This document shows positions 492 through 62,614 of a stretch of 64,000 nucleotides of DNA, piece after piece. Numbering within the stretch: the stretch's first letter is position 1; the number at the start of each line of letters is the position of its first letter. Origin of the DNA: Macrostomum lignano (lineage: Eukaryota); NCBI GenBank assembly GCA_002269645.1, contig NIVC01000181.1, positions 585,693 to 649,692 on the forward strand. The letters are read 5' to 3'. Below the pieces are notes generated by a model. The model had not been told where the DNA came from. It was given only the letters and a program-made list of their open reading frames with translations, and made no database searches. A program made the position numbers and the translations under genes.

Positions 492-674
492 ATGAAGTGG
501 CAACTGGTTCTCGGACTTCTGGTTTTCGCAGCCCTGGTCGTTGTCGAGCCCTCGGAGGCCAAGGCCGAAAGCGAGTCGAAGGAGGATCCGTCCGACTCGG
601 ACGATTCCAAGCTGTCGGAGGAGCAGTTCCCGAAGCTGAGGAAGAAGGGCTTCCACGTTCATTTTCATGGTTAG
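492..674 (+). CDS. His-rich secreted prepropeptide copy 1 (type A, mature GFHVHFH-G)
   Basis: ATG at 492 in GCAATCATG context. 60 aa MKWQLVLGLLVFAALVVVEPS (signal-like), acidic spacer, LRKK, GFHVHFHG stop. Conserved across 16 intact paralogues. Confidence 0.9.
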   Translation: MKWQLVLGLLVFAALVVVEPSEAKAESESKEDPSDSDDSKLSEEQFPKLRKKGFHVHFHG

Positions 675-1379
675 ATGAGCCACATAGCATATCGAAGTCG
701 CTTCATCGATCGGAAGATTGACAACCCACAGCTGACCGGACTTTGAACTTGGAATTGCGACCCACCAATTTTGAATGGCAAACAAGAAATCAACGCAGCC
801 CGTATTCACTGATCAGTTTTAAAAATATAACAACCAGTGCCATCTAAAAAGTCACCCAATGCAACAATACTATTTGTGTTGTTGAGCTTTGTAAATTTTT
901 TCAAGTTGCCAGTCGTCATGTGGAGGACTTTCAGATAAAAGTTTTTGCATTAAAGTAGTCAGAAAAGTGTTGATGCGATAAGGTACTCATTCGGCACATA
1001 TGGATTATATACTCGTATATTCGTTTTTGCCAAACTTTACCATTTGAAATAAGTTCACAACATAATGGGCGATTGTGCAAATACGCGTATACAATAACAT
1101 TTCCTAACTTTTCCGTTTGCTTTATGAATTCTTGTGACGATTCTTAACTCGTCACAAACAAGTGACTAAAGATGGTAAGCAGCTAACTAACTGTAGAGTT
1201 AACAGAATGTTCTCTTCTTGTTGTGAAAAATCGGTTATCAAATGTGCGAGCTGATTTAGGAAACGTGGAGCCAATTCGATCTATAGAACTATCATGGAGC
1301 TGGTACCCATTTTGTGAGAAATCTCCAAGAGATAGATGTGACAACTTGATGATTGATAACTTAGAGAACTAGTATTGAA

Positions 1380-3125: not shown

Positions 3126-3308
3126 CTAACCATGAAAATGAACGTGGAAGCCCTTCTTTTCCAGCTTGGAGAACTGCTCCTCCGACAGCTTGGAATCGTC
3201 CGAGTCGGACGGATCCTCCTTCGACTCGCTTTCGGCCTTGGCCTCTGAGGGCTCGACAACGACCAGGGCTGCGAAAACCAGAAGTCCGAGAACCAGTTGC
3301 CACTTCAT
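3126..3308 (-). CDS. His-rich secreted prepropeptide copy 2 (type A; FSKLEKK variant)
   Basis: Intact 60 aa ORF, paralogue of copy 1, with conserved promoter module upstream. Confidence 0.9.
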   Translation of the reverse strand: MKWQLVLGLLVFAALVVVEPSEAKAESESKEDPSDSDDSKLSEEQFSKLEKKGFHVHFHG

Positions 3309-6300: not shown

Positions 6301-7437
6301 CAAGCTACCATGGGGCTGACCATCTGACAGGAGTGGGGGGCCAGGACTCTAATTGATTTATTTCTGAGACCTGAGGCCCGAAGGCTTCCCGAAAGGGGCC
6401 GAAAAGGCCGAAAGCCATCAAATTCAAAATGATAATACCATAAATTTACGAGTAGCTGCACCTTCTTTGTATCGAATTTGAAATTCATTTGACACCACAA
6501 ATTGAAAATTTCATGAACGCATTGATGAGCATCGTAATAAAAGTCTGTCTCCCAGCAGAATCGGAGAAAAATGAACGATTAGACTGACAACAAAGATTGG
6601 GTAAAATTCGCAGGACAGCTGAGCATCTGCGTCAGAAATGCCAGAAATAAAATTGTCAAGTGTTTTCCAATCTGGTCCTGTTCAAGCTTTTCAAGAGAAC
6701 AGTACGCAGTAAGCGGTTATCGACAGCCTCGACGGTGTATCAGCTCTTTAGGATAGTAAAAAAACGTTTGGTGAGATTATGGGGCTGTAGAACATTAAAG
6801 TAAACAACCCCGTCAAAATACAATGCTTTTACTCCTTAACCTTGCGAATACGAGCCATTGTTCTCTTTTTTCTCTTTTTACATGCACTGTCTCTACTGAG
6901 ATTATTCTCCAAGATGAAATGCGACAGTTTTTCCACATCAAAAGTCTCATGCATATTTAGTCAAACGAATACGTTGTTGGATTGCAACGAAAATTGACAC
7001 ATAGCTACAGTTTCCTGCACTGCAGATATCCCGATTTCGCACATTTCTTCTACACAGTCGAAATATAGTGTAATATTGCTTTACTATGCGACTGAGTTCG
7101 CATTACGAGTCAAAGAGAGTGCTATGCAAAGCAGTGCAGTGCGGTGCGGTGCAGTACTTAGAATACCTGCAGTGTCCTGCTCTAAGAAAATGCTAAGGCG
7201 GTACTTGTTTGATTGCTCAGGTGTCAACAAGCAAACAAACGCTACATGTTTTCGCTTAAAGTAACGCCTGTCTCTGCTTACGCAAAAGCCTGCAATTCAA
7301 AAACCGCCGCTCGACGGAACGGAAACACGTGCCGATCCGATGCGCATAAATTCGAAGCTGCCGACTGCTCAACACAACAAGCTCAGACTCGACTCAATCT
7401 ACACACAGCTCGAAGAATCGACTCGACTCAAGCAATC

Positions 7438-7620
7438 ATGAAGTGGCAACTGGTTCTCGGACTTCTGGTTTTCGCAGCCCTGGTCGTTGTCGAGCCCTCA
7501 GAGGCCAAAGCCGAAAGTGAGTCGAAGGAGGATCCGTCTGACTCGGACGATTCCAAGATGTCGGAGGAGCAGTTCCCGAAGCTGAGGAAGAAGGGCTTCC
7601 ACGTTCATTTTCATGGTTAG
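7438..7620 (+). CDS. His-rich secreted prepropeptide copy 3 (type A)
   Basis: ATG at 7438 within ORF 7213..7620; intact 60 aa. Confidence 0.9.
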   Translation: MKWQLVLGLLVFAALVVVEPSEAKAESESKEDPSDSDDSKMSEEQFPKLRKKGFHVHFHG

Positions 7621-9265: not shown

Positions 9266-9448
9266 CTAACCATGAAAATGAACGTGGAAGCCCTTCTTCC
9301 TCAGCTTCGGGAACTGCTCCTCCGACAACTTGGAATCGTCCGAGTCGGACGGATCCTCCTTCGACTCGCTTTCGGCCTTGGCCTCTGAGGGCTCGACAAC
9401 GACCAGGGCTGCGAAAACCAGAAGTCCGAGAACCAGTTGCCACTTCAT
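9266..9448 (-). CDS. His-rich secreted prepropeptide copy 4 (type A)
   Basis: Intact 60 aa ORF; protein identical to copies 1 and 8. Confidence 0.9.
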   Translation of the reverse strand: MKWQLVLGLLVFAALVVVEPSEAKAESESKEDPSDSDDSKLSEEQFPKLRKKGFHVHFHG

Positions 9449-12400: not shown

Positions 12401-12463
12401 ATAAATTAACAGCTGCCGACTGCTCAACACAACAAGCTCAGACTCGACTCGACTCAAGCAATC

Positions 12464-12655
12464 ATGAAGTGGCAACTGGTTCTCGGACTTCTGCTGTTCG
12501 CATCCCTGGCCGTCGCCGAGCCTTCCCAGGAGGAGAACGACAAGGGCCAAAGTGATTCGAAGGATGATCGGACCGACATGGACGTTTCCGACCTGTCGGA
12601 TGAGCAGTTCCCGAAGCTCAGGAAGAAATTCCACCTTCATTTACCTGGTAAATAA
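12464..12655 (+). CDS. His-rich secreted prepropeptide copy 5 (type B, mature FHLHLP-GK)
   Basis: 63 aa; same signal peptide, longer and more acidic spacer (QEENDKGQSDSKDDRTDMDVSDLSDEQ), then LRKK-FHLHLPGK. Confidence 0.9.
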   Translation: MKWQLVLGLLLFASLAVAEPSQEENDKGQSDSKDDRTDMDVSDLSDEQFPKLRKKFHLHLPGK

Positions 12656-13399: not shown

Positions 13400-13401
13400 A
13401 C

Positions 13402-13433
<32 letters not shown>

Positions 13434-13880: not shown

Positions 13881-14307
13881 GAGTTCTCAGCTGAGTTTCG
13901 AGTGCCTAGAGTTAATTTTTGCACTAGACAATTGGGCAAATGAATTTTGATGCAGAGTCCCGTCAGCCTCAATAAAGAGACTTCGATATACGATTTGTCA
14001 TGAAAGCGACTAAAAAGTATCTGAATGAAGATGCATTTACAAGTCCTTTACTTCACGGCTCGCAACTTGAAGATATATACAAAGCCCAACAAAACAAACA
14101 GTATAGTTTCTTTGCGAGCCTATTTATATGGTACTTGTTGGTATATTTAATAAAACTCGCCAGTGAATGAACACTGAGTACACTACACCTCTACCATTTA
14201 GAAATTGGGGGGGGGGGTTGGAGTCAGAGTTCAGAGTCCGGTCGGCTGGGAGTTTTGAGTGCGAGTCCCTTAATCTTCGATAAAGCGACTTCGATGTACG
14301 ATTTTGT

Positions 14308-14498
14308 TTATTTACCAGGTAAATGAAAGCGGAATTTCTTCTTGAGCTTCGGGAACTACTCATCCGGTTTCCCGGAAGCGTCCATCTCGGAGGATCATTC
14401 TTCGACTCACGTTCACCCTTGTCGTCCTCCTCCTGGGAAGGCTCGGCGACGGTCAGGGCTGCGAACAGCAGAAGTCCGAGGGCGAGCTACCACTTTAT
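14308..14498 (-). pseudogene. Prepropeptide pseudogene copy 6 (type B)
   Basis: Start ATG changed to ATA (14496-14498), Gln4 codon changed to TAG (14487-14489), a frameshift in the spacer and a second TAG before FPK. C-terminus reads FRFHLPGK; the upstream E-box/TATA segment is missing. Confidence 0.85.
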
Positions 14499-15578
14499 GT
14501 TCGCTTGAGTCGAGTCGAGTCAAGCCTGAGCTTGTTGTTTGTCTCTTTATGTTTCATAGCAAAGCCAAATGGCGCTATCGATCGACTGTGGAGAAAAAAA
14601 TGCGCGAAATCGGGATATCTAAAGTACAGACTGTTGCACTATGGCCATTACCATGAATTCTCACTTTCAGACAACCCTCCATTAGAAAAGTTTATTTAGT
14701 CCCTTTGTAGCTTAGCCAGATCCCTCGGAGGTAAGTGAGATGATTTGGTCTACGATATGGTTTGGTATATCCAGATTATGTCCATCTCGCAGCACCTCAA
14801 CAAGTTTACACGCTACAATGAGTTCATGACTGTTTAGCACAAATTTGTTCTATTTCATCCAATGGTGAAAGCCCAGTGGTGTCGCAATGATTTAAAAGTG
14901 ATCTGAAAAAGAAAATTCTGACAGGTTGGTGTCGGAAAACGGTGGCAAGTCGGCTGTTTTCGCTCTGAGCGTTGGTAGATGGAACGAGGCGATGTAAGAA
15001 TATAAGCTGCAAATGGCGCGCTACCACGCATTTCTCGCCCCGTGTCTGGTTCTTCCGCATTTTCTGCCTGGTCGAGTAAGAAATCAAATCTAAGAAATTG
15101 TAAATAGCATCTGACAAGTTGAGATCTTCAATTGGAAACTGCACAAATCGACAACAAGTAGCCGAGTCGATCGATCTGTAGAAATCCCGATTTCGCGAAT
15201 TTCTTCTCTACAGTTGAGAAGAATTACTATGCTATTACTATTACTATTACTATGCTAATGATATGGAGTAAATACAGTGCAGTGTAGAGCGGTGCATAGG
15301 ATACATTCTCACTGAGAACACGCTAAAGCGGTACTCGTTTGATTGCTCAGGTGTCAACGTGCAAATATACGCTTCATAGTATTCGTTCAAAGCAACGCCT
15401 GTCTCAGCTCTCGCGAAAGCCTTCACCTCAAACATCGTCGCTAGACGGACCGGAAACACGTGCCGATCCGATGCGTATAAATTCGAGGCTGCCGACTGCA
15501 CAATACAACAAGCTCAGACTCGACTCAGTCTACGCACAGCTCGAAGAATCAAAGCAACTCGACTCGACTCAAGCAACC

Positions 15579-15761
15579 ATGAAGTGGCAACTGGTTCTCG
15601 GACTTCTGGTTTTCGCAGCTCTGGCCGTCGCCCAGCCCTCGGAGGCCAAGGCTGAAAGTGAGTCGAAGGAGGATCCGTCCGACTCGGACGATTCCAAGAT
15701 GTCGGAGGAGCAGTTCCCGAAGCTGAGGAAGAAGGGCTTCCACGTTCATTTTCATGGTTAG
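15579..15761 (+). CDS. His-rich secreted prepropeptide copy 7 (type A)
   Basis: ATG at 15579 within ORF 15339..15761; intact 60 aa. Confidence 0.9.
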   Translation: MKWQLVLGLLVFAALAVAQPSEAKAESESKEDPSDSDDSKMSEEQFPKLRKKGFHVHFHG

Positions 15762-19404: not shown

Positions 19405-19587
19405 CTAACCATGAAAATGAACGTGGAAGCCCTTCTTCCTCAGCTTCGGGAACTGCTCCTCCGACAGCTTGGAATCGTCCGAGTCGGACGGATCCTCCTT
19501 CGACTCGCTTTCGGCCTTGGCCTCCGAGGGCTCGACAACGACCAGGGCTGCGAAAACCAGAAGTCCGAGAACCAGTTGCCACTTCAT
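19405..19587 (-). CDS. His-rich secreted prepropeptide copy 8 (type A)
   Basis: Intact 60 aa ORF; protein identical to copy 1. Confidence 0.9.
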   Translation of the reverse strand: MKWQLVLGLLVFAALVVVEPSEAKAESESKEDPSDSDDSKLSEEQFPKLRKKGFHVHFHG

Positions 19588-20939
19588 GATTGCTTGAGTC
19601 GAGTCGATTCTTAGAGTTGTGTGTAGATTGAGTCGAGTCTGAGCTTGTTGTGTTGAGCAGTCGGCAGCTGCAAATTTATATGCATCGGATCGGCACGTGT
19701 TTCCGGTCCGTCGAGTGGTGTTGTTTGAGCTGAATGCTTTCGCGTGAGCAGAGATAGGCGTTGCTTTAAGCGAATATCATGTAGCGTTTGTTTGCTTGTT
19801 GACACCCGAACAGTCAAACAAGTACCGCTCAAGCATTTTCTTAGAGCAGGACACTGCAGGTATTCTCGTATTCGTTTCACTAAATATGAATGAGACTTTT
19901 GATGTGGAAAAACTGTCGTACTTCATCTAGGAGAAGAATCCCGGTAGAGACAGTGCATGTAAAAAAAAGAAAGAGAACAATATTCGTAAGATTAAGGAGT
20001 AAAAGCGTTGTATGTTGAGGGGGTTGTTAACTTAAATGTTTCACTCCCCCTCTTCTTATGCATATTCTTCTTTTTGAGTCTTGAAGTTTCTTCTTCTTGA
20101 TTTTTTTAGTTTCTTCTGCCTGTTAGGCTCCATTAATTGGTGAAATAAGACCGTTTGCATCTAATGACCCGATCAGCACAGTGATTAGAACTGTGATGAC
20201 CGGAAACACAATTTTTAGGTAGTTTAGCGATTCCTAGTTTTATTTAATCGGAATGAGGCGAAGCATACTTTTGTGACTATGTACTTTTTTTCTTGAATGG
20301 GTTATAATATTTTTTCTGAACTTGAAGGTCTTTTGCCTGGGATTTTTCAAATCCTAGTGCTTAAGTGGTAGCTTTTTTAAGTGGGCACCTTTGTTGTGTC
20401 ATGATATTACGATATATCACATGGTAAAGATATAAGTTTTAATCAATTTAACAAGTTTTCATACTAGGCAAGTGCCGTATAAGTCCGTCTTTCAGCAACT
20501 CACTCAATTAGTTTACTCAGTACATGTTCGAAACTGTTTAGCACAAATTTGTTCAATCTCATTTAACTGGAAAGCCCAGAAGAGTCGCGATGAGTTTAAA
20601 ATTTTTAGAAAGGGTGAAAAATGCTGTCGAAATAAACACGGCGGTAGCAAGTCGGAAGTTGTCGATTTGCGCGTTGGTAGATTAAACGAGCCGAAGTCAG
20701 AATATAAGCTTGCGAATGGCATGCTTCCACGCATTTCCAGCCTGTGTGTGGATTCTCGTCATTTTATGCTTTGTTCGATCAAACCAAATTGGCTACTGAA
20801 ATCTAAGCAGTTCGAAATCTAACCAGAAAAGTTAGAAACTACTATTAGAAACTGCAGAAATCGACACTCAGTGATCGGAACAACAATCTGTAAATATTCC
20901 CATGTCGTGGAATTTATTCTCCACTGCTGACAAATACAG

Positions 20940-21002
20940 ATGTCGGAGGAGCAGTTCCCGAAGCTGAGGAAGAAGGGCTTCCACGTTCATTTTCATGGTT
21001 AG
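20940..21002 (+). pseudogene. 5'-deleted prepropeptide copy 9 (type A C-terminus only)
   Basis: Only MSEEQFPKLRKKGFHVHFHG plus the normal 3' flank remains, joined directly to the far-upstream flank. Promoter, signal peptide and most of the spacer are absent. Confidence 0.85.
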
Positions 21003-21350
21003 ATGAGCCACATCGCACATCGAAATCGCTTCATCGATCGGAAGATTAAGGCAACTCACAGCTGGCCGGACTTTGAACTTTGACTCGGAACTGCCCAATT
21101 CTAAACGATAAACGTAATATTTGCCCGTATTTGCTGGTTAATTTTAAGAAATATAACAACCAGAACAGTATATTAGCTACCCAATGAAGCTATAATCTTT
21201 GTGTTTTTGAGCTTTGCTAATTTCTTCGAGTTGCGATTCATTCGGAGATTTTTTATACAAATTTACTTACGGATAACGTTTGGTCGCTTTCATGAGATAT
21301 TGTGCATCGAATTCCATTTATCGAAGCTCACTGGACTCTGAAATCTAACA

Positions 21351-21687
<337 letters not shown>

Positions 21688-21689
21688 AT

Positions 21690-22600: not shown

Positions 22601-22783
22601 CTAACCATGAAAATGAACGTGGAAGCCCTTCTTCCTCAGCTTCGGGAACTGCTCCTCCGACAGCTTGGAATCGTCCGAGTCGGACGGATCCTCCTTCGAC
22701 TCGCTTTCGGCCTTGGCCTCCGAGGGCTCGACAACGACCAGGGCTGCGAGCACCAGAAGTCCGAGAACCAGTTGCCACTTCAT
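22601..22783 (-). CDS. His-rich secreted prepropeptide copy 10 (type A)
   Basis: ATG at 22783 within ORF 22601..22939; intact 60 aa. Confidence 0.9.
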   Translation of the reverse strand: MKWQLVLGLLVLAALVVVEPSEAKAESESKEDPSDSDDSKLSEEQFPKLRKKGFHVHFHG

Positions 22784-26906: not shown

Positions 26907-27089
26907 ATGAAGTGGCAACTGGTTCTCGGACTTCTGCTATTCGCAGCCCTGGCCGTCGCCCAGCCCTCGGAGGCCAAGGCCGAAAGTGAGTCGAAGGAGG
27001 ATCCGTCCGACTCGGACGATTCCAAGCTGTCGGAGGAGCAGTTCCCGAAGCTGAGGAAGAAGGGCTTCCACGTTCATTTTCATGGTTAG
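26907..27089 (+). CDS. His-rich secreted prepropeptide copy 11 (type A)
   Basis: Intact 60 aa ORF; protein identical to copy 12. Confidence 0.9.
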   Translation: MKWQLVLGLLLFAALAVAQPSEAKAESESKEDPSDSDDSKLSEEQFPKLRKKGFHVHFHG

Positions 27090-34786: not shown

Positions 34787-34969
34787 ATGAAGTGGCAACT
34801 GGTTCTCGGACTTCTGCTATTCGCAGCCCTGGCCGTCGCCCAGCCCTCGGAGGCCAAGGCCGAAAGTGAGTCGAAGGAGGATCCGTCCGACTCGGACGAT
34901 TCCAAGCTGTCGGAGGAGCAGTTCCCGAAGCTGAGGAAGAAGGGCTTCCACGTTCATTTTCATGGTTAG
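34787..34969 (+). CDS. His-rich secreted prepropeptide copy 12 (type A)
   Basis: Intact 60 aa ORF. Confidence 0.9.
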   Translation: MKWQLVLGLLLFAALAVAQPSEAKAESESKEDPSDSDDSKLSEEQFPKLRKKGFHVHFHG

Positions 34970-36199: not shown

Positions 36200-36382
36200 T
36201 TATTTACCAGGTAAATGAAGATGGAATTTTTTCCTCAGCTTTGGGAACTGCTCCTCTGACATCTTGGAATCGTCGGAGTCGGACGGATCCTCCTTCGACT
36301 CGCTTTCGGCCTTGGCCTCTGAGGGCTCGACAACGACCAGGGCTGCGAGCACCAGAAGTCCGAGAACCAGTTGCCACTTCAT
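36200..36382 (-). CDS. His-rich secreted prepropeptide copy 13 (type A spacer, type B mature peptide)
   Basis: Intact 60 aa ORF: EAKAESESKEDPSDSDDSK spacer followed by LRKK-FHLHLPGK. Confidence 0.9.
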   Translation of the reverse strand: MKWQLVLGLLVLAALVVVEPSEAKAESESKEDPSDSDDSKMSEEQFPKLRKKFHLHLPGK

Positions 36383-36758
36383 GATTGCTTGAGTCGAGTC
36401 GATTCTTCGAGCTGTGTGTAGTCGAGTCTGAGCTTGTTGTGTTGAGCAGTCGGCAACTACGAATTTATGCGCATCGGATCGGCACGTGTTTCCGGTCCGA
36501 GGAGCGGCGTTGTTTGAGTTGCTTCGCGTGAGCAGACAGGCGTTGCTTTACTCGAATATCATGTAGCGTTTATTTGCTTGTTGACTCCCGAGCAATGAAA
36601 CAAGTACCGCTCTAACGTTTTCTCAGTGCAAATAAATCCCACTAATCGCGCTGCACTACACAACACGGAGCTTTGTTTAAGCAGTTCTATAGTAAAGCCA
36701 AATGACACTATCTTTTAAATGTGCAGAATAAATGTTTGAAACTAGGATTTTTAGGATC

Positions 36759-37002
36759 TGTCTCAAATTGTCTCCCCGCTGTCTCAAACTGTCTCTCCGC
36801 AGTCTCAAACTGTCTCTCCGCAGTCACAAACTGTCTCTCCGCAGTCTCAAACTGTCTCTCCGCAGTCACAAACTGTCTCTCCGCAGTCTCAAACTGTCTC
36901 TCCGCTGTCTCAAACTGTCTCTCCGCAGTCACAAACTGTCTCTCCGCAGTCTCAAACTGTCTCTCCGCTGTCACAAACTGTCTCTCATCAGTCTCAAACT
37001 GC
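36759..37002. repeat. 21-bp minisatellite (about 11 units)
   Basis: Unit (A/T)GTC(T/A)CAAACTGTCTCTCCGC. Confidence 0.95.
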
Positions 37003-37209: not shown

Positions 37210-37915
<706 letters not shown>

Positions 37916-38197
37916 ATGATCTATTTACCTATCTATATTAGAGATTTAATCACGGAAATTTTCACATGTTGAAGGCAAGTTAATCAAGCTGTTCGTACTG
38001 GTCCGGGAGCATCAGTCCCTGTGGCTGCTGCACATGTATCTCCAAGCGGCCAGAGCCAGCAGACTGGCCAACAAGGCACCTCTAAGAACGTCCAGGTAAT
38101 GGGAAATGTAGGTTAATAATTTAAGCCTGTAGCGGGCGAGGCGACAAGGCAGGTCGGTTTCGGTCTTTGACAGCTTTTCACACCTGCGTGGGAAGGG

Positions 38198-44100: not shown

Positions 44101-47100
44101 AATTTTGTCGATTTGAACAATACATACAATACAATGGTGTGAACGAGCCGTTAGTGAGAGTCGTGAGGTGAAGCTGGAGAGTCAGAGTAACTGGAAGAGT
44201 GAGCTTCCATTCGACGCAGGAGACATATGAGGGAGTTACCTTCTAAACGGAAGAGGTAAAACATTTATAAAAGCATCAGCATAGAGCTGCTCACACTCCT
44301 CTGCCGCCATTGCTATCCCAGTGTTGGAGCAGCTCAGGCTCGTTAATCGGCTGCAGGTGAGTCAGCACGCCGATGTCTCCATGGACTGCCAACGGAAATT
44401 CGTTGAACTGCACTCGCTCTGTTGGATTGTTGGATTATTGAGGGTAAATTTTAGGCAAGGTACTTTTGTATTGGAAGGTAAACTAAAAATGACTAGAAAA
44501 ACTTGTTAGATAAAAAACAAGAAATTACAGTTTCTTCCTTATCTGTCGCTGGTGCAACTGCATGTCAACATCTCAAGTTTCCAGTGAGGAGGCAAGTAGT
44601 TAAGGCAGGCCATTCTGATTACCTTTAAGTACATCGATGCGTACGCAGGCACACCACAGAATATACAGGCATAAATTTCAGCCGGGAATTCAGTGGCTTT
44701 AACATTCTTATTTTCAAGCATCTCAGTACACTCTGTGCCTTGAATGTCTGAGCCCACGCAAACCAAAGTACATGTGCCTTCGCGCGAGATTCAAATGTGT
44801 TGCTGTTGACGCCATTTTACTCAACCTGCAAGCGGGCGATCAAAGTCAATTGTTCGCTAATCCAACTAGCACACATTTTCGTGGTTGCATATATTATGGC
44901 CTGACTTTTCTCAGTGTACACAGTTAGTGCCTTTAACGCTCGTTCATACAGCGATCAAATAACGCCAATTTGGTGTCATCACACAGCCGGTACATATTTT
45001 TATTCCTTTTCAAATGGTTCGCGTGATTTGATGGTCAATTAGATGGCTGTGTGGACGTATCCACGAGTGATCTTAAATATATTCACAAAAGTGACAAATG
45101 AATATTATTTATTAATCAACGGAATTATATATGGGGTCAATATGCCCACCAAAATTTGGCATATTCCCCGCAACAATATTTTCGCTTTAGCGATTCATTC
45201 TAAATCTGATCAAAAAATCTAATAGAGACAGTCAATTTTTAACCACAAGTCATCAATAACGTGCACATTTACCAACAACGATGAAGAATAGGGTATAAAA
45301 GAAGCTTTTCATTATAGTCACCTCTTAAATTTAGCAAGCAGTGTGTGTGTGTGTCTGTGCTTGGAGCATAAAAAGCTTGAAGTGTGCAGAGTTTACTTTT
45401 ACTCGTATCACTAGATAATTGAGTAGTCAGATTTCAGAGTCCGGCCAGCTTCGATAAAGCTACTTCGATGTACGATGTGTAATGAAAGCGAAAAATCATT
45501 ATGTGCAAGTAGATGTATCCATAAGTGTTCCACGAGGACTTGACACTTGAAGAAATTACAAAGCTCAACGAAATTAATAATTTAGTTGTTTTGTGGGCCC
45601 AATTAGATGGTCCTGGTTGTTATATTTGTTAAAACTGATCAGCGAATAAGTGCTGTGTAGATTTTACGTTCATATTTAAGAATCGGGCGGTTGCGAGTAG
45701 AGTTCCGAGTCAGGTCAGCTGTGAGTTGTCTTAATCTTCCGATCCATGAAGCCAATTGTACGATGTAAGATGTGGCTCATCTAACCATGAAAATGAACGT
45801 GGAAGCCCTTCTTTTCCAGCTTGGAGAACTGCTCCTCCGACAGCTTGGAATCGTCTGGGTCGGACGGATCCTCCTTCGACTCACTCTCGGCCTTGGCCTC
45901 CTCCTGGGTGGGCTGGGCGACGGCCAGGGCGGCGCACAGCAGAAGTCCGAGAACCAGTTGCCACTTCATGATTGCTTGAGTCGAGTCGATTCTTCGAGCT
46001 GTGTGTAGATTGAGTCGAGTCTGAGCTTGTTGTGTTGAGCAGTCGGCAGCCTCGAATTTATACGCATCGGATCGGCACGTGTTTCCGGTCCGTTGAGAGA
46101 CGTTGTTTGAGATGAAGGCTTTTGCGTGAGCAGGGACAGGCGTTGCTTTAAAAGAATTTTATGTAGTGTATATTTGTTTTATAACAACTGAGCAAAAAAA
46201 GTATCACTCTAGTGTTTTCTCAGTTCATCTTACGTATCGCAGTACTCTGCAGTGTACTGCACTGCATTTGACTCTTTATCTGTTGCATAGTAAAGCCGAA
46301 TGACACTATCTATCGCCTGCGCAGAATAAATTCAGAATGTCTACAGATTTTTGTCTCGGCTACTTTGTGTCGCTTTTTGCAGTTTCCGATGGTAGCTCTT
46401 AACTTGTCAAAGGTAGTTTTCTGGGTGAGGGCAATATATCCGCCGTACAACTGCAGAGGTCTCATGCTCCACTGTATTTTGCTGGTGAACTAAAATAATG
46501 CCGAGAGTGTTGGGCTCAACCTCAAAGTTTTAAACCTCTTTCATGGATTGAGCTCTGCGGATAAAGCTCTGGATCAAGTAAATGTCTGGGCGTGCAGGGT
46601 GACGGCCCTGCCTCCAATGGCAGTGGCGTCGTCACCGTAACCAACCGAAAATGAAGACAGGGCCTGGCCAGGGATCACTCGGAAGGCACTCATGACCAGG
46701 ATTCAGAGCGTCGGCGTGAAAGCTCAGCCTTTGGATCCTCCCTTTCAGAATCTGGTGGAAGGGATTTGCACGCAAAGTTAAGCAGTGACCGTAGGGATGG
46801 AAATCATGTTCATAATGCACCGTGGAGAGTAGCATGAGCTTTGTGATTTTAAAGGGCCACCTGACACACCTTGATGATTACATTATCAAAAGCACCTTCA
46901 AGGTTGAGGGAAAGACTGAAGGCATAACTGTCGCCCAGCCACGCCCGTTCTACTATTGCATGTAAAGCGAAATAAAGATATGACAGATGCTTCGTGAAGA
47001 AGAACTGGGTAGGTACCATCAGCTCCAAGAGAGTTGAAGGGCTTGAGGGTTCCAACCGCACAGGTGATAGAGTCTTTTGTAACGATGCCTGCCACCAAAG

Positions 47101-50100
47101 TGGCTCCCTACATAGGGTTCTGTGGGTAACTTTGCAAAGATGGTGCTGAGCATTTGTTAAATCATTTCTTAAGAGCTTTTAGTTAGAGAGCCATCATAAT
47201 TTCTTATGATGGCTAGTTTGGACATTTTTTTCCAACTGTCAGGGGCTTGACAAGCCTAGACGTAGGTTTCGTGATCCAACTCATTGCAGAATATCCGCCA
47301 CATACCTTGGCCTTCCGCACCTCAGAATTGAAGTTTTTGGGTTACAAGTTTTTGTGGCGCTGCGGTGAGGGCTTTTGGCCTTCGGTCTGAGCTTCTCCGG
47401 GCTACACCACGGACTGAAAGAAGTCTTGCCTTTGTAGGCACGGACAAGACAGGCCGCTTCAAAAGCTGCAGTAATGCAGCCTGTTTGCCTCTCAGCCATT
47501 TGATCGAATTCCTCCTAGGCCTCAATCGGACGCTCGTCCGTGAGTTCCTGCAGGTGCAGATCGAAGGTAGCCTTATAGGCTGTCCAATCAGTGTTGCGGA
47601 AGTTATCCCTCCAAGTACTCAAGGCCTGGAGCTGAGTTTCCGCGATGTTAAAGGCGATGGAGCAGACGTCAGATAAAGTGGGTTTTCGTTGACCAGATCA
47701 GAGTCTGGGGTAACGAGTGTGGCATCGAGAAAATTGGTGCATGTGGCATTTTCGAAGGTAAGAGTGCTTCTGTGGTTGCAGAGCATAATATTTGAAAAAA
47801 GATGAGAAAAAGAATCTCCTACCCTCTAGCATTAGTGCTTTTGCTGTCCTAGTGCTTATGATGTGTGTTAAGGTCGTCCCCCAAGCACAGCTCAGCCTTC
47901 TGAAATTCGTAGTATTGCGCTCGGCGCAGTTAGGGTCCCTGTTACCTAGGATATCACCCTATCACCCTGTCACACCAAGAGAGATTGTCAGATTGGATGA
48001 CACAAAGACCTCCATCTGAAAGATCGCCCTCGGCCAAGCCTGGAGATGGCTGGCAGCGAGGATGGTCACTGTAGGGCAACTGTTCTCCGGGCCACAAACA
48101 TTGAAGTCAGAGTAGCCATGAGGAATGTTGAGCAACTAACAGTTGCGCATCCAGGGTTCCTTGATTAGGATAAGGAGTGGCCTGTGCAACTTGGCAATCT
48201 TAATAAAATTTACTGACGCAGACGGGCAATAGATTTATTTGTAGACAGAAAGTTACTCCTTTGGCAGAGTGGAGGTTAGTCATAATACGCTCGTATACTA
48301 AATTCAAGTTATGAACGATTCTCCCGTCAAGGAGACTATACAGGATTTAATCCTTTTCTGATTCCGTCGGGGCTCGTTTGAGAGATTGACTTGGAGATTT
48401 CCGCCAGAGTCCTCAGGCTCCGATGACAAAATGGAAGAGATTTCTCCCCTCGACCCCCGAACCCCACCAGAGTAGCTGAGGAGAGCTCAGATTCTGAAGA
48501 CTTGGCTTCGTCCTCAAATCCTCCGTTTGTTAGGTTCTGCTCTCAGAGCCCGACCACACTCCTTCACCTAGGATCACCGAATCCCAAGTGGGTTCCAATG
48601 GCAGGGTACCAAATTTTTGTTCTTATGCCTTCCATTTGACCCTTTGTGGAATTCTAAGTCTAGGGGACGTGGCCTTCCATGTTGTCAATTTAAAAGCTAT
48701 CTACTCATGTCGGCTCACCTACCGCACACACAGTTAAGCCACTAAGAGCAGTTGTATTCGAAAAAACACGGGAAAATTCCAGGAAATGCTCGTAGTGCGC
48801 CAAAGATTCAAAGATAACGCATTTACGGTTAACTGCGTGTCTTTGTTAGCCATATTGTCGGTGACGAATAACGAATCGCCACGAGAAATCATAAATATTT
48901 TTTCAAATCTTCCTTCATGTAGCTAATATTTTTTGAAACAGTTCATTAAGCTACTAACTCTTTTTTAAATGGTAAAATTCGGCGAAAACGAAGAAATAAC
49001 TGATAATTGCAGACCTTATCGCATCAAGTCGCAAATTATCTATCGCATCAACAAGTTTTCAATGAATTTCATGCGACAAAGCATTCTCCACATTACGATT
49101 CGCAACTTGAAAAAATTACAAAGCTTAACAACATTAATAATACGAGTATAGTTGCTTTGTGTGCTCAATTCGATTATGATGATCTACGAGCTACAAGTCC
49201 TCTACATTACGACTTTCGAATTAAAGAAATTTACAACGCTCAACAAAACAAAAATTATAGCTTTACTGGATGCCTAATTAGATGGTACTGGTTGTTATAT
49301 TTGTTATAACTGATCAGCGAATAAGGGCAGTGAAGATTTCAGGTTTACTTTTTAAGAAGTTCAAAGTCAGTGTTCAAAGTTCTGTCAGCTGTGAGTTGTC
49401 TTAATCTTCCGATCCATGAAGCCAATTGTACGATGTAAGATGCTGCTCATCTAACCATGAAAATGAACGTGGAAGCCCTTCTTCTTCAGCATCGAGAAAT
49501 GCTCCTCCGACAGCTTGGAATCGTCTGGGTCGGACGGATCCTCCTTCGACTCACTTTCGGCCTTGGCCTCCTCCTGGGTGGGCTGGGCGACGGCCAGGGC
49601 GGCGCACAGCAGAAGTCCGAGAACCAGTTGCCACTTCATGATTGCTTGAGTCGAGTCGATTCTTCGAGCTGTGTGTAGATTGAGTCGAGTCTGAGCTTGT
49701 TGTGTTAAGCAGTCGGCAGCCTCGAATTTATACGCATCGGATCGGCACGTGTTTCCGGTCCGTTGAGAGACGTTTGAAATGAAGGCTTTTGCGTGAGCAG
49801 AGACAGGCGTTGCTTTACACCCGAGCAATCAAAAAGTACTGCTCTAGCGTTTTTTTTCAGTGCAAATTTATCCTACGGCACTGCACTTCAATGCACTCTA
49901 CTTGACTATGTTGCATAGTAAACCCATATGACTATCTATCGTCTGTGGAGAAAAAAATGCGTACAATTTGGGATATCTACAGATTGTTATTTCGGCTACT
50001 GCGTGTCTATTTCTGCAGGTTCTGGTGGTTGTTCTCGACATGTCAGATGGTTTTTTGCAATCCTTAGATTCGATTGTTTACTCGATCTGGGTAAGCGGAT

Positions 50101-53100: not shown

Positions 53101-56100
53101 TCACAACAAGATCGGCGAAAAATAAATGAATACATTGACAACCAAGATTGGCAACAATTAGCGGGATCGCTGAACATTTGCGTCAGTCTGCCAGAACTAA
53201 ATCGTCAAATGCGTCTAATCCGGTCGTGTTCAAGCTGTTCAAGAGACCAGGACGCAGCCTCATCGTTCCTTTGCGCGAATATCATGTGGGAATCCCGGTA
53301 GAGACAGTGAAAAAGAGAAACTACGAATCTATCAATCTATCAATCTACCCGATAGAAGAGTTTATCAAATTTAAAAAGGCGATAAAAGTTTTTAATAACA
53401 AAATCACCATTACAGTCTTGAGGAGGGGAGGGGAGGGGATTGAAGAAAGTGAGATTTAGCAAAAATTGTATTCTAGAAAACTACCCCGCCACGAAAACTA
53501 CTAGCCTTTATCTCGTCTTGCGAATTATTCTCATCTTCTTTTACACTCTCTACCGGGATTCTAAAGTGGCAGTTTTGCTACTTTGAATAACTTTCGCATA
53601 CGCTCCTATTTAGTGAAGAAATGAATACCTGGTTGTATTGTGAATATTTCATGAAAATGCAGCACTAAGTCATGGCAAGTTGCCAGGTAAACATTTAAGG
53701 GGTAAGAAGTCGTGAGGGAAAGTAGTCCCCTCTAATGAGTAAGTAGCCAACGTGAGATAAAGATGTGAATTAGAAACCTTTTAAATAAAGATCTGCCAGG
53801 TAAACCAAGCTCCATCAACTATATCAGACAATCCAGATTGAGTCCATCTCGCAGCCCCAATCAACAATCTGAACCTTATCTAGTGGTTACTTTAATGAGA
53901 GCTCAGGGGGCTTTGCAGTGATTAAAGAATATATTCAGACAGTTTGATGTCGAAGGATCGAGATGAAGAAAGAATAAAAGCTGGCAAACTGTGCGCTTCC
54001 ATGCATATCTGGCCGGCCATGCGTCCGGTTGTCGGCTCACTAAATCCGCTTACCCGTATCACAACTTCAAACAATCAAAGTACCCTGGTAGTTCTAAGTA
54101 GCACCTGACAAGTTGAGAACCGCCATCAGAAACTGCAGAAATCGACACGCAGTAGCCGAAATACATATCTGTAGACATCCCGATTTCGCAACTTTTATCT
54201 CCACAATCGATAGATATAGTGTCATTTGGTTTTCTTATACAAATCATTAAAATTCGTAGAGTGCCGCGCAGTGCAGTGTGTAGGATAAATTCACACTTAG
54301 AAACGCTGGAGCCTTACTTGTTTGATTGCTCAGGTGTCATAAAGCAAATAGACGCTGCAATGATATTTGGTTAAAGTAACGCTTCTCTGCTCAAGCGAAA
54401 GATTGCAACTCAAACAACGTCGCTCATCGGATCAGACAGGAAACACGTGCCGATCCGATGAGCATAAATTCGCCGACTGCTGACTGCTCAAGAAAACAAG
54501 CTCAGACTCAACACGACTCAAGCAATCATGAAGTGGCAACTGGTTCTCGGACTTCTGCTGTTTGCAGCCCTGGCCGTCGCTGGGCCCTCAGAGGCCAAGG
54601 CCGAAAGTGAGTCGAAGGAGGATCCGTCCGACTCGGACGATTCCAAGCTGTCGGAGGAGCAGTTCCCGAAGCTGAGGAAGAAATTCCATCTCCATTTACC
54701 TGGTAAATAAGCAGCATCGTACGTCGAAGTCGCTTCATCGAAGATTAAGACAACTCACAGCTGACCGTACTTTGGACTCTGATCGGAACCGCCCAACTCC
54801 TAAAAATTAAGCGTGAAATCTACACAGCCCTTATTCGCTGATCAGTTTTAACAAATATAACAACCAGCACGATCTAAATAAGCACCTAAAAATCCAAAAT
54901 ATTTGTGTTGACAAGCTTTTTCATTTTTGTCAAGTCGCAAGTTGTCATGTGGAGCACTTGAAGAAACGAGTGTAAATCGTCTTGTAGTTAATAATTTGTC
55001 GCAGGAATTCAACAAAAAAGTGTTGAATTATAAGATACTCATTAGGAAGTTTTTGGTTATTCATTTATTCATTTCACAATTTCAAATAAACTCAACTTTA
55101 TTGTTGATTTCACAGTGCTCAACAGTAAAACTACCAAGAGAGGGGAGCTTCTGGACCTTCAACAGGTGGCCCCATGTGACTATGGACGAGCTGTTGCAAA
55201 ATTCTCCTGTTTCGCCGATCAAGCTTCAATAATGGGCAAGCCTCAACTGCTGGACATGCGTCATCAACCTGACGCCGTCGGTACCTTCAACAGATTAGCT
55301 GAGCCTGGATGAAGGCAAGTGATCAACGAAGTCAGAGCTGCAGACACATATGGTCGACGTACTGATGAAATTTGGAGGCTGCACTGAGGCGCAGGGCTGA
55401 TTGGCGCACAGGGGTGTACTGAATACACTAGGACTTCATCATCAAGGGAAAAATCCGATCTTCTGGATCTTCTGGCAGAATCGTCGAATATCTCAACGGT
55501 CCGGAGGGCTGGCGAATTTTTTCTTGTTTGAGACGGTGCGCAACAAAAATTTTGCCCGTGTTCTTGAATTCCGTATGCCTGCGTTGCTCCGTTCCGGCGC
55601 AACAAAAAATTGTCATGGGGGAATCCCCCCTTCTTGGTAGTTCGACGGGCGGAAAATGGCTTGGTATTCCTACTAGCTCGTAGTATTCTACATGGATAGC
55701 GAGGCCAAAAAACGATTTAAATGTACAAGGATATGATACAATAAATTAGGAATGAGCGGGGTCATGTGGGGTCAGGTAAAAGGTGTGTACAATGCTTTTT
55801 TGAATTGCGAAATGATAATGATGAGATACATCTGCGCGCACTTTGAGCCTTCGCTGTCGAGTCGTGTTATAAAATCTTATTGAAAACAAAATTAATTGTA
55901 TTCTGTCTATTGTCACTTGTCAAATTGTAACGCCCTTCACTTAGAGATTTCTCCTGAAATGGGCATTTGCTTCATGATGGCTCCATGAATCGAACGTTTT
56001 ATTAAACGGCGCAACTAAGTCAAAAAACAAGAGAACAATCTGTGAGTTAGCGTGACTCAGCCGCAATTATGTCAAACTCTAAAGCTGCATAACATGTTTA

Positions 56101-59100
56101 GTCTTATTTTGGTGACGAGTTACAAATCACCCCAACAATATAATAAATGACCGGAAAAGTTTCGAACTGCTATTTAAGCACTACGCAATAGTCCATAAAG
56201 TAGTAAGCTTGTTGCGATCGAAAAATATTTGCGAAAATGAATGAATAAGCCATAAGCGCTGAATAAGTATCATATCGAATCAACACATTTTGCTACATTT
56301 CGTGCGACAATTCACTTACTGCAAGACGCTACAAGTCTCTACAAGTTCTCCACATTACGACTTTTGAATTAAAGAAATTTACAACGCTCAACAACACAAA
56401 AATTATAGCTTTATTGGGTGCCTAATTAGATGGTGCTGGTTGTTTTATTTGTTAAAACTGATCAGCGAATAAGTGCTGTGTAGATTTTACGTTCATATTT
56501 AAGAATTTGGCGGTTCCGAGTAGAGTTCCGAGTCAGGTCAGTTGTGAGTTGTCTTAATCTCCCGATCCATGAAACCACATGTGCGATGTACGATGTGGCT
56601 CATCTAACCATGAAAATGAACGTGGAAGCCCTTCTTTTCCAGCTTGGAGAACTGCTCCTCCGACAGCTTGGAATCGTCCGAGTCGGACGGATCCTCCTTC
56701 GACTCACTTTCGGCCTTGGCCTCCTCCTGGGTGGGCTGGGCGACGGCCAGGGCGGCGCACAGCAGAAGTCCGAGAATCAGTTGCCACTTCATGATTGCTT
56801 GAGTCGAGTCGATTCTTCGAGCTGTGTGTAGATTGAGTCGATTCTGAGCTTGTTGTGTTGAGCAGTCGGCAACTACGAATTTATACGCATCGGATCGGCA
56901 CGTGTTTCCGGTCCGTTGAGAGACGTTGTTTGAGATGAAGGCTTTTGCGTGAGCAGAGACAGGCGTTGCTTTAACCGAATATCATGTAGCGTTTATTTTC
57001 TTGTTGACACCTGAGCAATGCTAGAACAAGTACCGCTCTAGCGTTTTCTCAGTGCAAATATATTCTACGTACCGCAATAGACTGCACTGCATTGCATTTT
57101 GCTCTTTATCAGATGCATTAGTAAAGCCAAATGACACTATCTATCGAATATGGAAAAATATGGTAAATGGCTTAGCGATTGTTTTCTACAATTTGTTGTT
57201 TGCGCTGCTGCTAAATTCAACGTTGACATCCATTTCTGTAGTTTCCAATTGGGGTTCTAAGCTTGCCATGTGCTATTTAGAACTCCTTATATTTGATTCC
57301 TTAATCGACTCGGGTGAGCGGATTTCATGAACAGATTTCATAGTGACATCAAGGATATCTCTTCCCTAGAGGCGCAAGATAATGTCTCGGAGCTGATGAC
57401 AGGGCAGGAGAGAAGCGCCATTGGATTGCCTGCAGGTTCTCATGTTCCTGCCAGTAACGCCTGTGGTGCTACGCTCTGCAGTACAAAAGCTGATGACAAG
57501 ATGGTGTTAGTCCAGTGTGCTTAGCATGGGTTGCAACCGCACATTTAAGAAAATTCAAACACTATAGGTAGTCTCGTCTGACTGCATTGAACCATCGGTT
57601 TTTCAATGGAACTCAGCTGGGTTTCAGCGTAAGTGATGATAGCGAAGTAGCGACGTAGCGACTCGAAAAAAGAGTATATCAAAAGCTGCCAAACGGCGAA
57701 CATGCATTTCTTTCGCTAGGTCTGAATTTTCCGATTTTTCTGCTTTGTTCGATCGCACACGAAATCGGCTCCCTAAATCCGCTACCCGGTAATAAGAAAG
57801 TAAGGAATCAAATCTACGAGCTAAGGAGTTCTAAATAGCGTCTGAAAAGTTGAGAACCACTAATCAGAAATTGACACGCAGTAGCCGAGACAAAAATCTG
57901 TAAATATCCTGTTTTGCGCATATATTCTCCACAATTGATAGATAGTGTCATTTGGCGTTACTATGCAACTGTCTTAATATTCAAATGCAGTTTAGTACAG
58001 TGAGGTTCCTAAGAGACATTTGCGCTGTGAAAATGCTAGAGCGGTACTTGTTTGATTGCTCGGGTGTCAAAAAGCAAACAAACGCTACATGATATACGCT
58101 TAAAGCAACGCTGCTCGCGCAAAAGACTTCAAATCAAACAACGTTGCTCGACGGATCGGAAACACGTGCCGATCCGATGCGTATATATTAGCAGCAGCCG
58201 ACTGCTCAACACAACAAGCTCAGACTCTACTCGACTCAAGCAACCATGAAGTGGCAACTGGTTCTCGGACTTCTGCTGTTCGCAGCCCTGGTCGTCGCCG
58301 AGCCTTCCCAGGAGGACGACAAGGGCCAAAGTGATTCGAAGGATGATCCGACCGAGATGGACGTTTCCAGCATGTCGGATGAGCAGTTCCCGAAGCTCAG
58401 GAAGAAATTCCACCTTCATTTACCTGGTAAATAAGCAACATCGTACATCGAAGTCGTTTTATCGAAGAATAAGTGACTAGCACTCAAAACTCACAGCTGA
58501 CCGGACTCTGAACTTTGACTCTGAACCGAACAATGCCTGAATGGTAAACGTGAAATCTACACAGCCCGTACTCACTGATCAGTTTTAATAAATATAACAA
58601 CAAGCTGCATCCTTCTTGGTACCTAATGCAACTGTAATATATGTGTTGTTGAGCTTTGTAAATTTGCTCGAGTCACAAGTCGTCACGTGGAGAACTTGTA
58701 GACACATTGACTTTAAATACTTCAAATACTTCAAATAAGAAGTAGTTATTCTTTGCAGGAAAAATAGAAAAATGACTCGCTAATGACTGTGGAGCATGTT
58801 TGTTTGGGTTCTAATGTAGAGTAAGTCTTTCGCGAATTGTATCTTTTCGATGTTTTCATTAGTGTCAGGACACGCGGATTTTCTATTTGGACTCCTTTCC
58901 CTTGTATTTTTTTTCATTGTCAGCTCATAAAATTGGCCCTATGAGACTGTGAAAAGCCAGAGCAGCTTAAACCGAGTTACTGCACAAAGCAACTTATAAT
59001 GGAGGCCTATCAGCAAAACAGTGCGCTCAATCACCCGCCTTTCTCTTCGCTTGTTAATTAAAATCGTTAGAGAAGCCATCTTCTGGGCTTAATTATCTGA

Positions 59101-62580: not shown

Positions 62581-62614
62581 TTTCAGGGCGAGTTGACACT
62601 CCAAATATTAAAAA

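Follow-up and report, generated by a model that had tools for sequence, protein, structure and literature searches.

Frog-skin peptide precursors of the preprodermaseptin/temporin kind consist of a signal peptide, an acidic spacer, a dibasic site and a short tail ending in G or GK, and they are encoded by multigene families in which the prepro part is conserved and the peptide is hypervariable. Hydra arminins form a lineage-restricted family of many paralogs in which an anionic N-terminal part balances a cationic, amidated C-terminal peptide. In Caenorhabditis elegans, the neuropeptide-like nlp-29/cnc genes, which have a role in epidermal defence, lie in tandem clusters of secreted-peptide genes of ~60-80 codons. 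This study analysed a 64,000-nucleotide stretch of the genome of Macrostomum lignano, a free-living flatworm of the sea (assembly Mlig_3_7, GCA_002269645.1, positions 585,693-649,692 of the 797-kb contig NIVC01000181.1), hereafter the window, and the array of very short genes with His-rich C-terminal tails that it contains. The window is best explained as one homeologous copy of a tandem, mixed-orientation array belonging to a family of M. lignano secreted prepropeptides.

The flatworm family has the tripartite layout of the frog-skin precursors, and their gradient of conservation was measured in it as well; however, the frog precursors are cut at KR to release Lys-rich helices of 10-46 residues, whereas the genes of the window are single-exon, carry KK and encode His-based peptides of 6-7 residues. 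Homology to preprodermaseptins or temporins was found neither with Pfam nor with a profile search of 1.84 billion representatives. The charge balance of the arminins also recurs in the flatworm family, with no homology detected; the active arminin peptide has ~31 residues, whereas the peptides of the window are ultra-short, with His in place of Arg/Lys. The nlp-29/cnc peptides, again with no homology detected, are Gly/Tyr-rich and their inducible defence role has been demonstrated, whereas the flatworm peptides alternate hydrophobic and basic residues and a defence role is proposed for them here.

Two groups of synthetic peptides and one of natural peptides bear on the tails themselves. The designed (X-R/K)n-NH2 peptides, such as IRIKIRIK, resemble the predicted family members FVRVRVRL-, IFRVRVRI- and WLRVRARVRI-NH2 in their period-2 pattern, their length and their amide end; they are synthetic and built on Arg/Lys, whereas the window peptides carry His and would therefore be charged only below ~pH 6.5. 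Designed catalytic amyloids (Ac-IHIHIQI-, Ac-IHVHLQI- and Ac-LHLHLRL-amide) match the predicted GFHVHFH-, FIHIHF- and FHLHLP-NH2 in core, length (~7 residues) and amide; the designs are N-acetylated. We know of no natural counterpart of these heptapeptides. Among natural His-bearing peptides, piscidins have an N-terminus with His at position 3, of the amino-terminal copper- and nickel-binding (ATCUN) type. Clavanins, histatins and piscidins are helical, have 22-38 residues and come from precursors of a different organisation, without homology to the flatworm peptides. In this group pH and Zn/Cu modulate activity. Clavanins are His-rich peptides of tunicate hemocytes (PMC8424629, PMC5198042).

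The array and its gene unit

A six-frame regular-expression scan and a listing of the open reading frames (ORFs) of the window found 16 intact single-exon ORFs of 60-63 codons, the first starting at 492 and the last ending at 58,434. There are also two dead copies, one a decayed pseudogene and the other a 5'-truncated remnant. The sequence-only reading that preceded this analysis had reported this copy number, this span and a split of the tails into 12 and four behind an invariant KK, all of which were recovered. The terminus KKGFHVHFHG closes 12 of the 16 intact ORFs, nine with 60 amino acids (aa) (g01, g02, g03, g04, g07, g08, g10, g11, g12) and three with 62 (g14, g15, g17), and KKFHLHLPGK closes the other four, g05 (63 aa), g13 (60 aa), g16 (60 aa) and g18 (62 aa). 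Every intact ORF opens with MKWQL(V/I)LGLL; a hydrophobic stretch comes next, then a middle part rich in Asp, Glu and Ser, and KK is invariant across all 16 genes. A chance origin of the array is excluded because the ORFs are 69-100% identical as proteins and share a 31-nt promoter motif that occurs 16 times against 0 expected. The genes had been described as intronless, and the coding sequences (CDS) are indeed uninterrupted; the GenBank gene range equals the CDS length, so that the genes are modelled as single exons there too.

Read directly from the sequences, the signal region comprises an MK n-region, a hydrophobic core of 16 residues and small residues at -3/-1 (S-E-A or A-V-A). Before the stop codon, 16 of 16 genes end in G or GK, an amidation-type signal, and the two forms are connected by a 1-nt change in the last codon (GGT TAG to GGT AAA TAA) that keeps the Gly. 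The layout proposed beforehand, with a predicted signal peptide, acidic propiece, basic site and short tail, holds and gains weight from the paralog comparison below. The structure of the genes, the selection on them, their membership of one family and their transcript-derived annotation are shown here, whereas the processing of the precursor, its activity and its tissue are inferred. The predicted signal peptide (MKWQLVLGLLVFAALVVV…) would be removed on entry into the endoplasmic reticulum, with S-E-A|K or A-V-A|Q/E as candidate sites, and the anionic propiece (net -5 to -8) would neutralise the C-terminal peptide during storage in the regulated secretory pathway. A convertase would cleave after the invariant KK, a carboxypeptidase would trim the trailing K of the GK forms and a peptidylglycine amidating enzyme would use the terminal Gly, giving GFHVHFH-NH2 from 12 genes and FHLHLP-NH2 from four.

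The gene unit is an independent single exon of ~0.7 kb with a conserved upstream region, a short and highly conserved 5' untranslated region (5'UTR) and an ORF of 183-192 nt; its core promoter is CGGAAACACGTGCC…ATAAAT. The motif GGAAACACGTGCCGATCCGATGnnnATAAAT, in which a CACGTG E-box is followed by a TATA box, lies upstream of every intact gene. The 31-nt promoter motif has exactly 16 occurrences, one at each intact gene and none at either dead copy, against 0 expected by chance (100 shuffles). The distance from TATAAAT to ATG is 93 nt in the common form and 64 nt where the 5'UTR is 29 nt shorter. The promoter of g04 (9535-9565, minus strand) is the sole one among the intact copies in which the E-box is destroyed (CACGTGCCG to CACGCGCTC); the ORF is still intact, and g04 may be a transcriptionally weakened copy.

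The GenBank annotation of Mlig_3_7 was built from RNA sequencing (RNA-seq) and de novo transcripts, with a core gene set that omits transcripts overlapping the repeat annotation. The family models in it, all named "hypothetical protein", are "partial" ORFs read from transcript 5' ends, so that the copies with models have transcript-derived support, the absence of which the sequence-only reading had named as a point that would count against it. Counted back from the ATG, model 5' ends lie at 51-54 nt where the UTR is long and at 24-30 nt where it is short, in both cases 34-42 nt downstream of the TATA box; transcript starts therefore appear to track the TATA box and not the ATG. Of the 16 copies, 7 or 8 have a model: one each for g01, g07, g10, g15 and g18, a chimera for g04, and P0032, the identical product of g11 and g12, for one or both of these. 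Five copies (g02, g05, g08, g16, g17) have no model, and the product of g03 is annotated in identical form on a homeologous contig; this count leaves out g13 and g14. The expectation that such short ORFs are missed by annotation pipelines was accordingly borne out for the five copies without a model and not for the seven or eight that are covered. The chimera, BOX15_Mlig016106g1 (P0037, 9266-15779, minus strand), is a 129-aa product in which the antisense strand of g07 is spliced onto the sense ORF of g04, and it probably arose by transcript assembly across inverted paralogs. A similar-looking model at another locus (L001) spreads 79 aa over 7.9 kb.

Within the array, nucleotide diversity is 0.039 in the 5'UTR, 0.09 in the CDS, 0.165-0.25 in the 3'UTR and 0.40 farther out. 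The CDS is under purifying selection, as seen in the excess of third-position differences (0.076, 0.060 and 0.135 for the three codon positions), in-frame indels and a low ratio of non-synonymous to synonymous differences per site (pN/pS) in the main type. The CDS indels measure 3, 3 and 9 nt, apart from the terminal 1-nt change that makes the GK tail, and 54 of 68 indel events in the flanks are not multiples of three. Among the GFHVHFHG genes pN/pS is 0.07-0.5 (0.18 for their propiece), away from the value near 1 that the sequence-only reading would have taken as contrary evidence, and the FHLHLPGK tail has two synonymous variants and no non-synonymous one. Between the two propiece types pN/pS is ~0.8-1.5, with 0 synonymous and 8 non-synonymous differences between g05 and g18; therefore, the propiece diverges fast between subtypes. 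The copy at 14,062-14,521, which lost its promoter, has decayed.

Concerted evolution has played a part as well: the 27-nt GFHVHFHG tail with its stop codon is nucleotide-identical in 21 of 21 copies over three contigs, and g13 and g16 are mosaics of a type-1 5' half and a type-2 tail. Because the 5'UTR is more conserved than the CDS, the tail lacks synonymous variation and g13 and g16 are mosaic, the data suggest gene conversion or an RNA-level constraint on top of protein-level selection; the selection estimates are blurred by gene conversion.

A BLAST search with one copy and its flanks against the window gave matches of ~650-780 bp to every other copy, and of 1.2-1.4 kb in some pairs, with end points that vary between copies by >100 bp. 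In the 16-way alignment, identity is highest over the 5'UTR and CDS and fades gradually on both sides to 0.2-0.4, and neither analysis of the window copies showed the sharp, consistent termini of a mobile element. Since similarity fades gradually and no termini are fixed, the unit is a duplicated gene and not a transposon. A transposon or satellite origin was ruled out by the fuzzy boundaries together with the clear coding signature, which also answers the concern, raised with the first description, that the unit might belong to a transposon.

The family in Macrostomum

A profile of the window proteins was run against 1.84 billion representatives, two profile searches were run against a 5.8-billion-protein set, and cluster look-ups were added. 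The family comprises at least 55 distinct GenBank "hypothetical protein" products on at least 15 contigs, and M. lignano is the source of every member whose origin is recorded. The only other member lies on a 929-bp genomic contig (Logan SRR31628392), and apart from this contig no homologue outside Macrostomum was found in the profile searches of either protein set. The Logan contig carries a gene at 541-813 with a Pro/Arg-rich tail of 33 residues (FLRVRLPRVRMPRVRLPRVRLPRLRVRFRWSKK) and a recognisable version of the family promoter (upstream motif GGAAAAACGTGGCC…GCATAAATA); it comes from another Macrostomum species, or else represents a paralog of M. lignano that is missing from the assembly.

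Common to the family are the signal peptide (MKWQLALGLLLCAALAVA…) and an acidic propiece. KK was found in all recovered members except P0063 (EK), and a terminal G or GK in all recovered paralog types except P0011 (SKK) and P0063 (AVL). The C-terminal peptides are hypervariable, with alternating hydrophobic and basic residues. The tails recovered include a His type (FIHIHFG), mixed His/Arg types (IFRVHVRFG, FVRVHVRFG, IFRVRVHIG, IFRVRARIHIG), short Arg types (IFRVRVRIG, FVRLRVRIG, WLRVRARVRIG, FVRVRVRLG, FVRVRARIRLG, FIRARVRVRLG) and long Arg types (FRIRIRWGRVARNVLRLLGK, WLLRRIRIRWRRVLRVASRVYRIYRYLPIGK, WRIRFRRIRIRWRRVYRVVRTAYRIYRHLPFPGK, WRIKSACKIFRRLLHLARKCYAKKG, WRRRRRFRWRKAIRVAGKVAKAVL and that of the Logan contig). 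This gives a series that runs from FIHIHF through IFRVHVRF, IFRVRVRI, FVRVRVRL and WLRVRARVRI up to Arg/Trp-rich peptides of 24-33 residues with charges of +10 to +15. In appearance the longer members resemble antimicrobial peptides of the classical cationic kind. The window genes are best explained as the shortest, His-for-Arg branch of this (Phi-B)n series of alternating hydrophobic and basic peptides with predicted amidation.

Arg-type and FIHIHF arrays lie at 438-476 kb of the same contig, 110-150 kb upstream of the window, with the 2-4-kb spacing and the mixed orientation that the window genes also have. In core promoter, 5'UTR and signal-peptide coding sequence these paralogs are nearly base-identical to the window genes, and the propiece and tail have diverged. 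One variant in these arrays (L004 17002-17220) reads through into an extended tail, WLRVRARVRVGSRRRSRSG. His-type arrays are also present on two other contigs, 208.6 kb and 533.7 kb long. The genes of the former follow the order and orientation of g01-g05 with similar spacing, which fits a homeologous copy as expected in this neopolyploid.

Among 14 representative paralogs, mean pairwise identity falls from 0.78 in the signal peptide to 0.47 in the propiece and 0.21 in the C-terminal peptide. The net charge of the propiece ranges from -4 to -13 and correlates with that of the peptide (r = -0.85, a descriptive value for related sequences and not a formal test). The short members have a near-maximal period-2 hydrophobic moment; shuffles of single 6-8-mers gave p values of 0.03-0.2, which are weak alone because few permutations exist, and the pattern convinces only family-wide, where the members are non-independent. 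The computed charge at pH 8.1 is +3.4 to +4.4 for the Arg 8-10-mers, and the long members carry ~+6 to +15; the His peptides fall from ~+3 to +4 at pH 5 to ~+0.5 at pH 8.1 and are charged only below ~pH 6.5.

Pfam searches with His- and Arg-type members gave nothing above cut-off. The sub-threshold matches, which owed their scores to the signal peptide or to low complexity, were rejected as spurious, and so was a borderline Lock_Gag1-like match on an internally duplicated paralog. An exact look-up of the bare 60-aa product returned no record, a full-text literature search with the peptide strings and four gene ids had no match, and no Macrostomum antimicrobial peptide is described in the searchable literature. 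The first description could assign the precursors to no known family, and the Pfam, profile and full-text searches leave that position unchanged: the architecture is of a known kind, the family itself is undescribed, and its ultra-short His peptides with their alternating pattern form an unusual variant within it.

A proposed host-defence role and its alternatives

A conserved prepro part, a hypervariable cationic amphipathic tail, charge balance, an amidation signal, tandem amplification and lineage restriction together are the signature of host-defence peptides such as frog-skin peptides, cathelicidins and Hydra arminins; in neuropeptide families the mature peptide is the conserved part. We give somewhat better than even chances to the reading, drawn from the sequences, that this taxon-restricted family encodes a secreted host-defence effector of the antimicrobial type that is produced at high dosage. 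For the His forms, a cationic, membrane-active state would be limited to acidic pH, with specialisation for acidic compartments; alternatively, they would work by binding Cu/Zn. The sequence-only reading had left the role of the secreted effector among defence, mucus or adhesive component, toxin and pheromone; defence is the part of that list that we retain at this strength, and the Arg-rich members of the family appear to point away from a toxin or pheromone. There are two experimental precedents: the synthetic 8-mer IRIKIRIK, whose alternating design is that of FVRVRVRL or IFRVRVRI, is broadly bactericidal (PMC4330034), and His-rich, metal-binding, pH-dependent antimicrobial peptides exist, for example the clavanins (PMC8424629, PMC5198042).

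Several observations weigh against a defence role or the steps leading to it. With 6-7 residues, the peptides would fall below the length of almost every natural antimicrobial peptide, and those of the window are, by computation, nearly uncharged in seawater. KK is not a canonical furin site, and the only convertase of M. lignano that has been studied, a pc2 homologue, has its expression in the nervous system (PMC4490696). Models P0001 and P0030 reach upstream of the TATA box, which makes the placing of the transcription start tentative. Gene conversion, and not selection, may partly explain why 5'UTR and CDS diverge so little and why the GFHVHFHG tails are identical. Additionally, Mlig gene ids or sequences of the family were not found in the supplements of PMC5816591, PMC7336406, PMC5946080, PMC5977470 and PMC12896417, and literature searches yielded nothing on where any member is expressed, on detection of its peptide or on its activity.

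The precursors could instead belong to neuropeptides, hormones or pheromones, short amidated peptides of 6-10 residues that act on receptors, with the array raising the dosage of the signals or their diversity. In size and chemistry the products are typical of neuropeptides, the termini of some paralogs would be -RFamide, -RIamide or -RLamide (IFRVHVRF-, IFRVRVRI- and FVRVRVRL-NH2), flatworm neuropeptides such as GFVRIamide exist (PMC13026224), and dibasic cleavage by the PC2 homologue, which is neuronal in M. lignano (PMC4490696), would fit. However, the conservation pattern is reversed, with the prepro part kept and the mature peptide hypervariable (0.78, 0.47 and 0.21), and the profile searches returned no relative outside M. 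lignano besides the Logan contig, so that the conservation across flatworm species that marks FLP/NPP peptides was not found. The same family also holds peptides of 24-33 residues with charges of +10 to +15, it has at least 55 paralogs with no orthologue beyond Macrostomum in 1.84 billion representatives, and its propiece charge scales with the peptide charge as in antimicrobial precursors. A signalling role is therefore rather unlikely.

The peptides might also form a material, kept soluble and protonated in acidic granules and assembling into metal-binding beta-sheet fibrils in seawater of pH ~8, as part of mucus, adhesive, rhabdites, eggshell or another secretion; we regard this as unlikely. 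The computed charge drops from ~+4 at pH 5 to ~+0.5 at pH 8.1, and a product secreted in bulk would suit the very high gene dosage. ATCUN motifs, which bind Cu/Ni, require a free N-terminus with His at position 3; the GFH and FIH N-termini of 12 window genes and one paralog would provide it only if cleavage falls exactly after KK, whereas FHLHLP has His at positions 2 and 4. The predicted peptides share the Phi-H-Phi-H-Phi pattern and the C-terminal amide with the designs IHIHIQI, IHVHLQI and LHLHLRL, which form Zn-binding amyloid fibrils at pH 8 (PMC10008563). Against such an assembly, the Arg-type paralogs, the majority of the family types, keep a high charge at pH 8 that would not let them assemble in this way, and since they share the promoter of the His genes, the family probably has one role. 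Furthermore, FHLHLP ends in Pro, a beta-sheet breaker, and the natural peptides would have a free N-terminus where the designs are acetylated. GFHVHFH-NH2, FIHIHF-NH2 and FHLHLP-NH2 could be natural counterparts of the designed (hydrophobic-His)n amides, whose Zn-binding amyloids are catalytically active. Stored protonated beside the polyanionic propiece in acidic granules, they would shed their charge in seawater of pH ~8, take up Zn/Cu and form a functional beta-sheet material or a metal-activated antimicrobial coat, a proposal that we regard as unlikely. If true, it would explain the extreme gene dosage and would make these the first ultrashort metallo-amyloid peptides of an animal to be genetically encoded and made by the ribosome.

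A reproductive role, in which seminal-fluid or female-tract peptides evolve fast under sexual selection and are amplified for dosage, appears improbable. Small secreted lineage-restricted proteins that diverge fast are typical of the prostate-limited transcripts of M. lignano (PMC5977470), and the divergent propiece types have pN/pS ~1, or 0 synonymous against 8 non-synonymous differences; however, the text supplements of the prostate screen gave no match to the family, in a small text portion of 27 kb (PMC5977470), and no sequence feature indicates reproductive tissue. This reading is about where the peptides are expressed, and antimicrobial activity would not conflict with it.

We assign a similarly low probability to the acidic propiece of 25-35 residues being the product itself, as a Ca-binding, phosphorylated or anti-adhesive polyanion with the tail as a sorting or neutralising tag, or to a protein of ~40 residues that acts uncleaved. 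The propiece is better conserved than the tail family-wide (0.47 vs 0.21), is under purifying selection in the main type (pN/pS 0.18) and holds S-x-E type motifs, but KK and the terminal G/GK are kept in nearly all paralogs over tail lengths of 6-33, which is hard to explain for a tag, and the tails are invariant at the protein level within the array.

Finally, that the ORF is a non-functional passenger of a transposable element or satellite, its conservation reflecting recent copying, is highly improbable: high copy number, mixed orientation, a transposon-rich window and the 21 nucleotide-identical GFHVHFHG tails would suit it, but BLAST boundaries differ by >100 bp with gradual decay and no consistent unit ends, codon-position bias, in-frame indels and a decayed promoterless pseudogene mark a coding gene, the GenBank core gene set omits repeat-overlapping transcripts, and paralog divergence is ordered and function-like.

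Neighbouring elements and significance of the locus

The coordinates of the copies and of the other elements of the window are collected in the table. The Sel1-repeat gene is the sole gene within the array that belongs neither to the family nor to a transposon. That the retroelement beside g11 is DIRS-like is only a guess. The three packed ORFs near the end of the window gave no Pfam or PHROG match, and sequence searches of the PDB with the first (61,951-62,604) and third (63,049-63,972) found nothing significant (best, an FtsK-like EccC ATPase, E = 0.34); from their sequences they may represent part of a Maverick/Polinton-like or viral element. The microsatellites and minisatellites give long spurious 'IYLS' ORFs.

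Table. Family copies and other elements of the window (positions count from its first letter).
Feature	Position	Strand	Promoter motif	Details
g01	492..674	+	375-405	60 aa, ends KKGFHVHFHG; TATAAAT at -93; model P0030
g02	3126..3308	-	3395-3425	60 aa, ends KLEKKGFHVHFHG; no gene model
g03	7438..7620	+	7321-7351	60 aa, GFHVHFHG type
g04	9266..9448	-	9535-9565	60 aa, GFHVHFHG type; 3 mismatches in motif; only chimeric model P0037
g05	12464..12655	+	12376-12406	63 aa, divergent propiece, ends KKFHLHLPGK; 5'UTR 29 nt shorter
Pseudogene	~14062..14521	-		FHLHLPGK type; ATG to ATA, 1-nt frameshift, in-frame TAG; promoter replaced, TATA lost
g07	15579..15761	+	15452-15482	60 aa, GFHVHFHG type; model P0039
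g08	19405..19587	-	19674-19704	60 aa, protein identical to g01
5'-truncated dead copy	~20938..21227	+		last ~20 codons (…SEEQFPKLRKKGFHVHFHG, stop) and 3' flank; without promoter and signal peptide
g10	22601..22783	-	22870-22900	60 aa, GFHVHFHG type; model P0029
g11	26907..27089	+	26790-26820	60 aa, GFHVHFHG type; piggyBac-type and reverse-transcriptase-type insertions alongside; P0032
g12	34787..34969	+	34669-34699	60 aa, protein identical to g11
g13	36200..36382	-	36463-36493	60-aa mosaic, GFHVHFHG-type signal/propiece and FHLHLPGK tail
g14	45781..45969	-	46056-46086	62 aa, QE insertion, ends KLEKKGFHVHFHG
g15	49451..49639	-	49726-49756	62 aa, ends MLKKKGFHVHFHG; models P0004/P0041
g16	54528..54710	+	54439-54469	60-aa mosaic, type-1 propiece, FHLHLPGK tail with two synonymous changes; not called in GenBank
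g17	56604..56792	-	56879-56909	62 aa, GFHVHFHG type; not called in GenBank
g18	58246..58434	+	58158-58188	62 aa, divergent propiece, FHLHLPGK tail; TATATAT variant; model P0005
piggyBac-type transposase ORF	24,381-25,631	-		416 aa; upstream ORF 25740-26114; Pfam DDE_Tnp_1_7, E = 3.5e-39; between g10 and g11
Retroelement	~27552-31569	+		GC-rich (0.57) overlapping long ORFs; RVT_1, E = 4e-12; adjoins g11
Host-gene-like exons	~38510-42795	-		one with Sel1 repeat, E = 1e-10
Three packed co-oriented ORFs	61951-63972	-		217, 145 and 307 aa; first with Walker-A-like GVNQSGKT
(AGAT/ATCT)n tetranucleotide microsatellites	21350-21686, 37210-37936			84 and 182 copies
Minisatellites	36760-37001, 38292-38470			21-bp and 28-bp, between family copies

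For annotation, the locus is a case in which only 7 or 8 of 16 window copies are modelled, one of them as a chimera. Beyond this, it brings to light a family restricted to one lineage, whose paralogs, at least 55 of them annotated, lie in several homeologous clusters and have one compact promoter in common. Transgenesis, RNA interference (RNAi) and in situ methods are available in M. lignano, and the conserved promoter of ~300 bp and the peptides are directly testable. To our knowledge, little is known of the peptide effectors of innate defence in free-living flatworms. The family offers a natural series that extends from 6-residue His peptides to 33-residue Arg-rich peptides on one alternating motif, which can be read as a structure-activity experiment performed by evolution on minimal amphipathic beta-strand peptides and includes natural versions of motifs at which chemists arrived independently by design, both the IRIK-type antimicrobials and the His-based catalytic amyloids.

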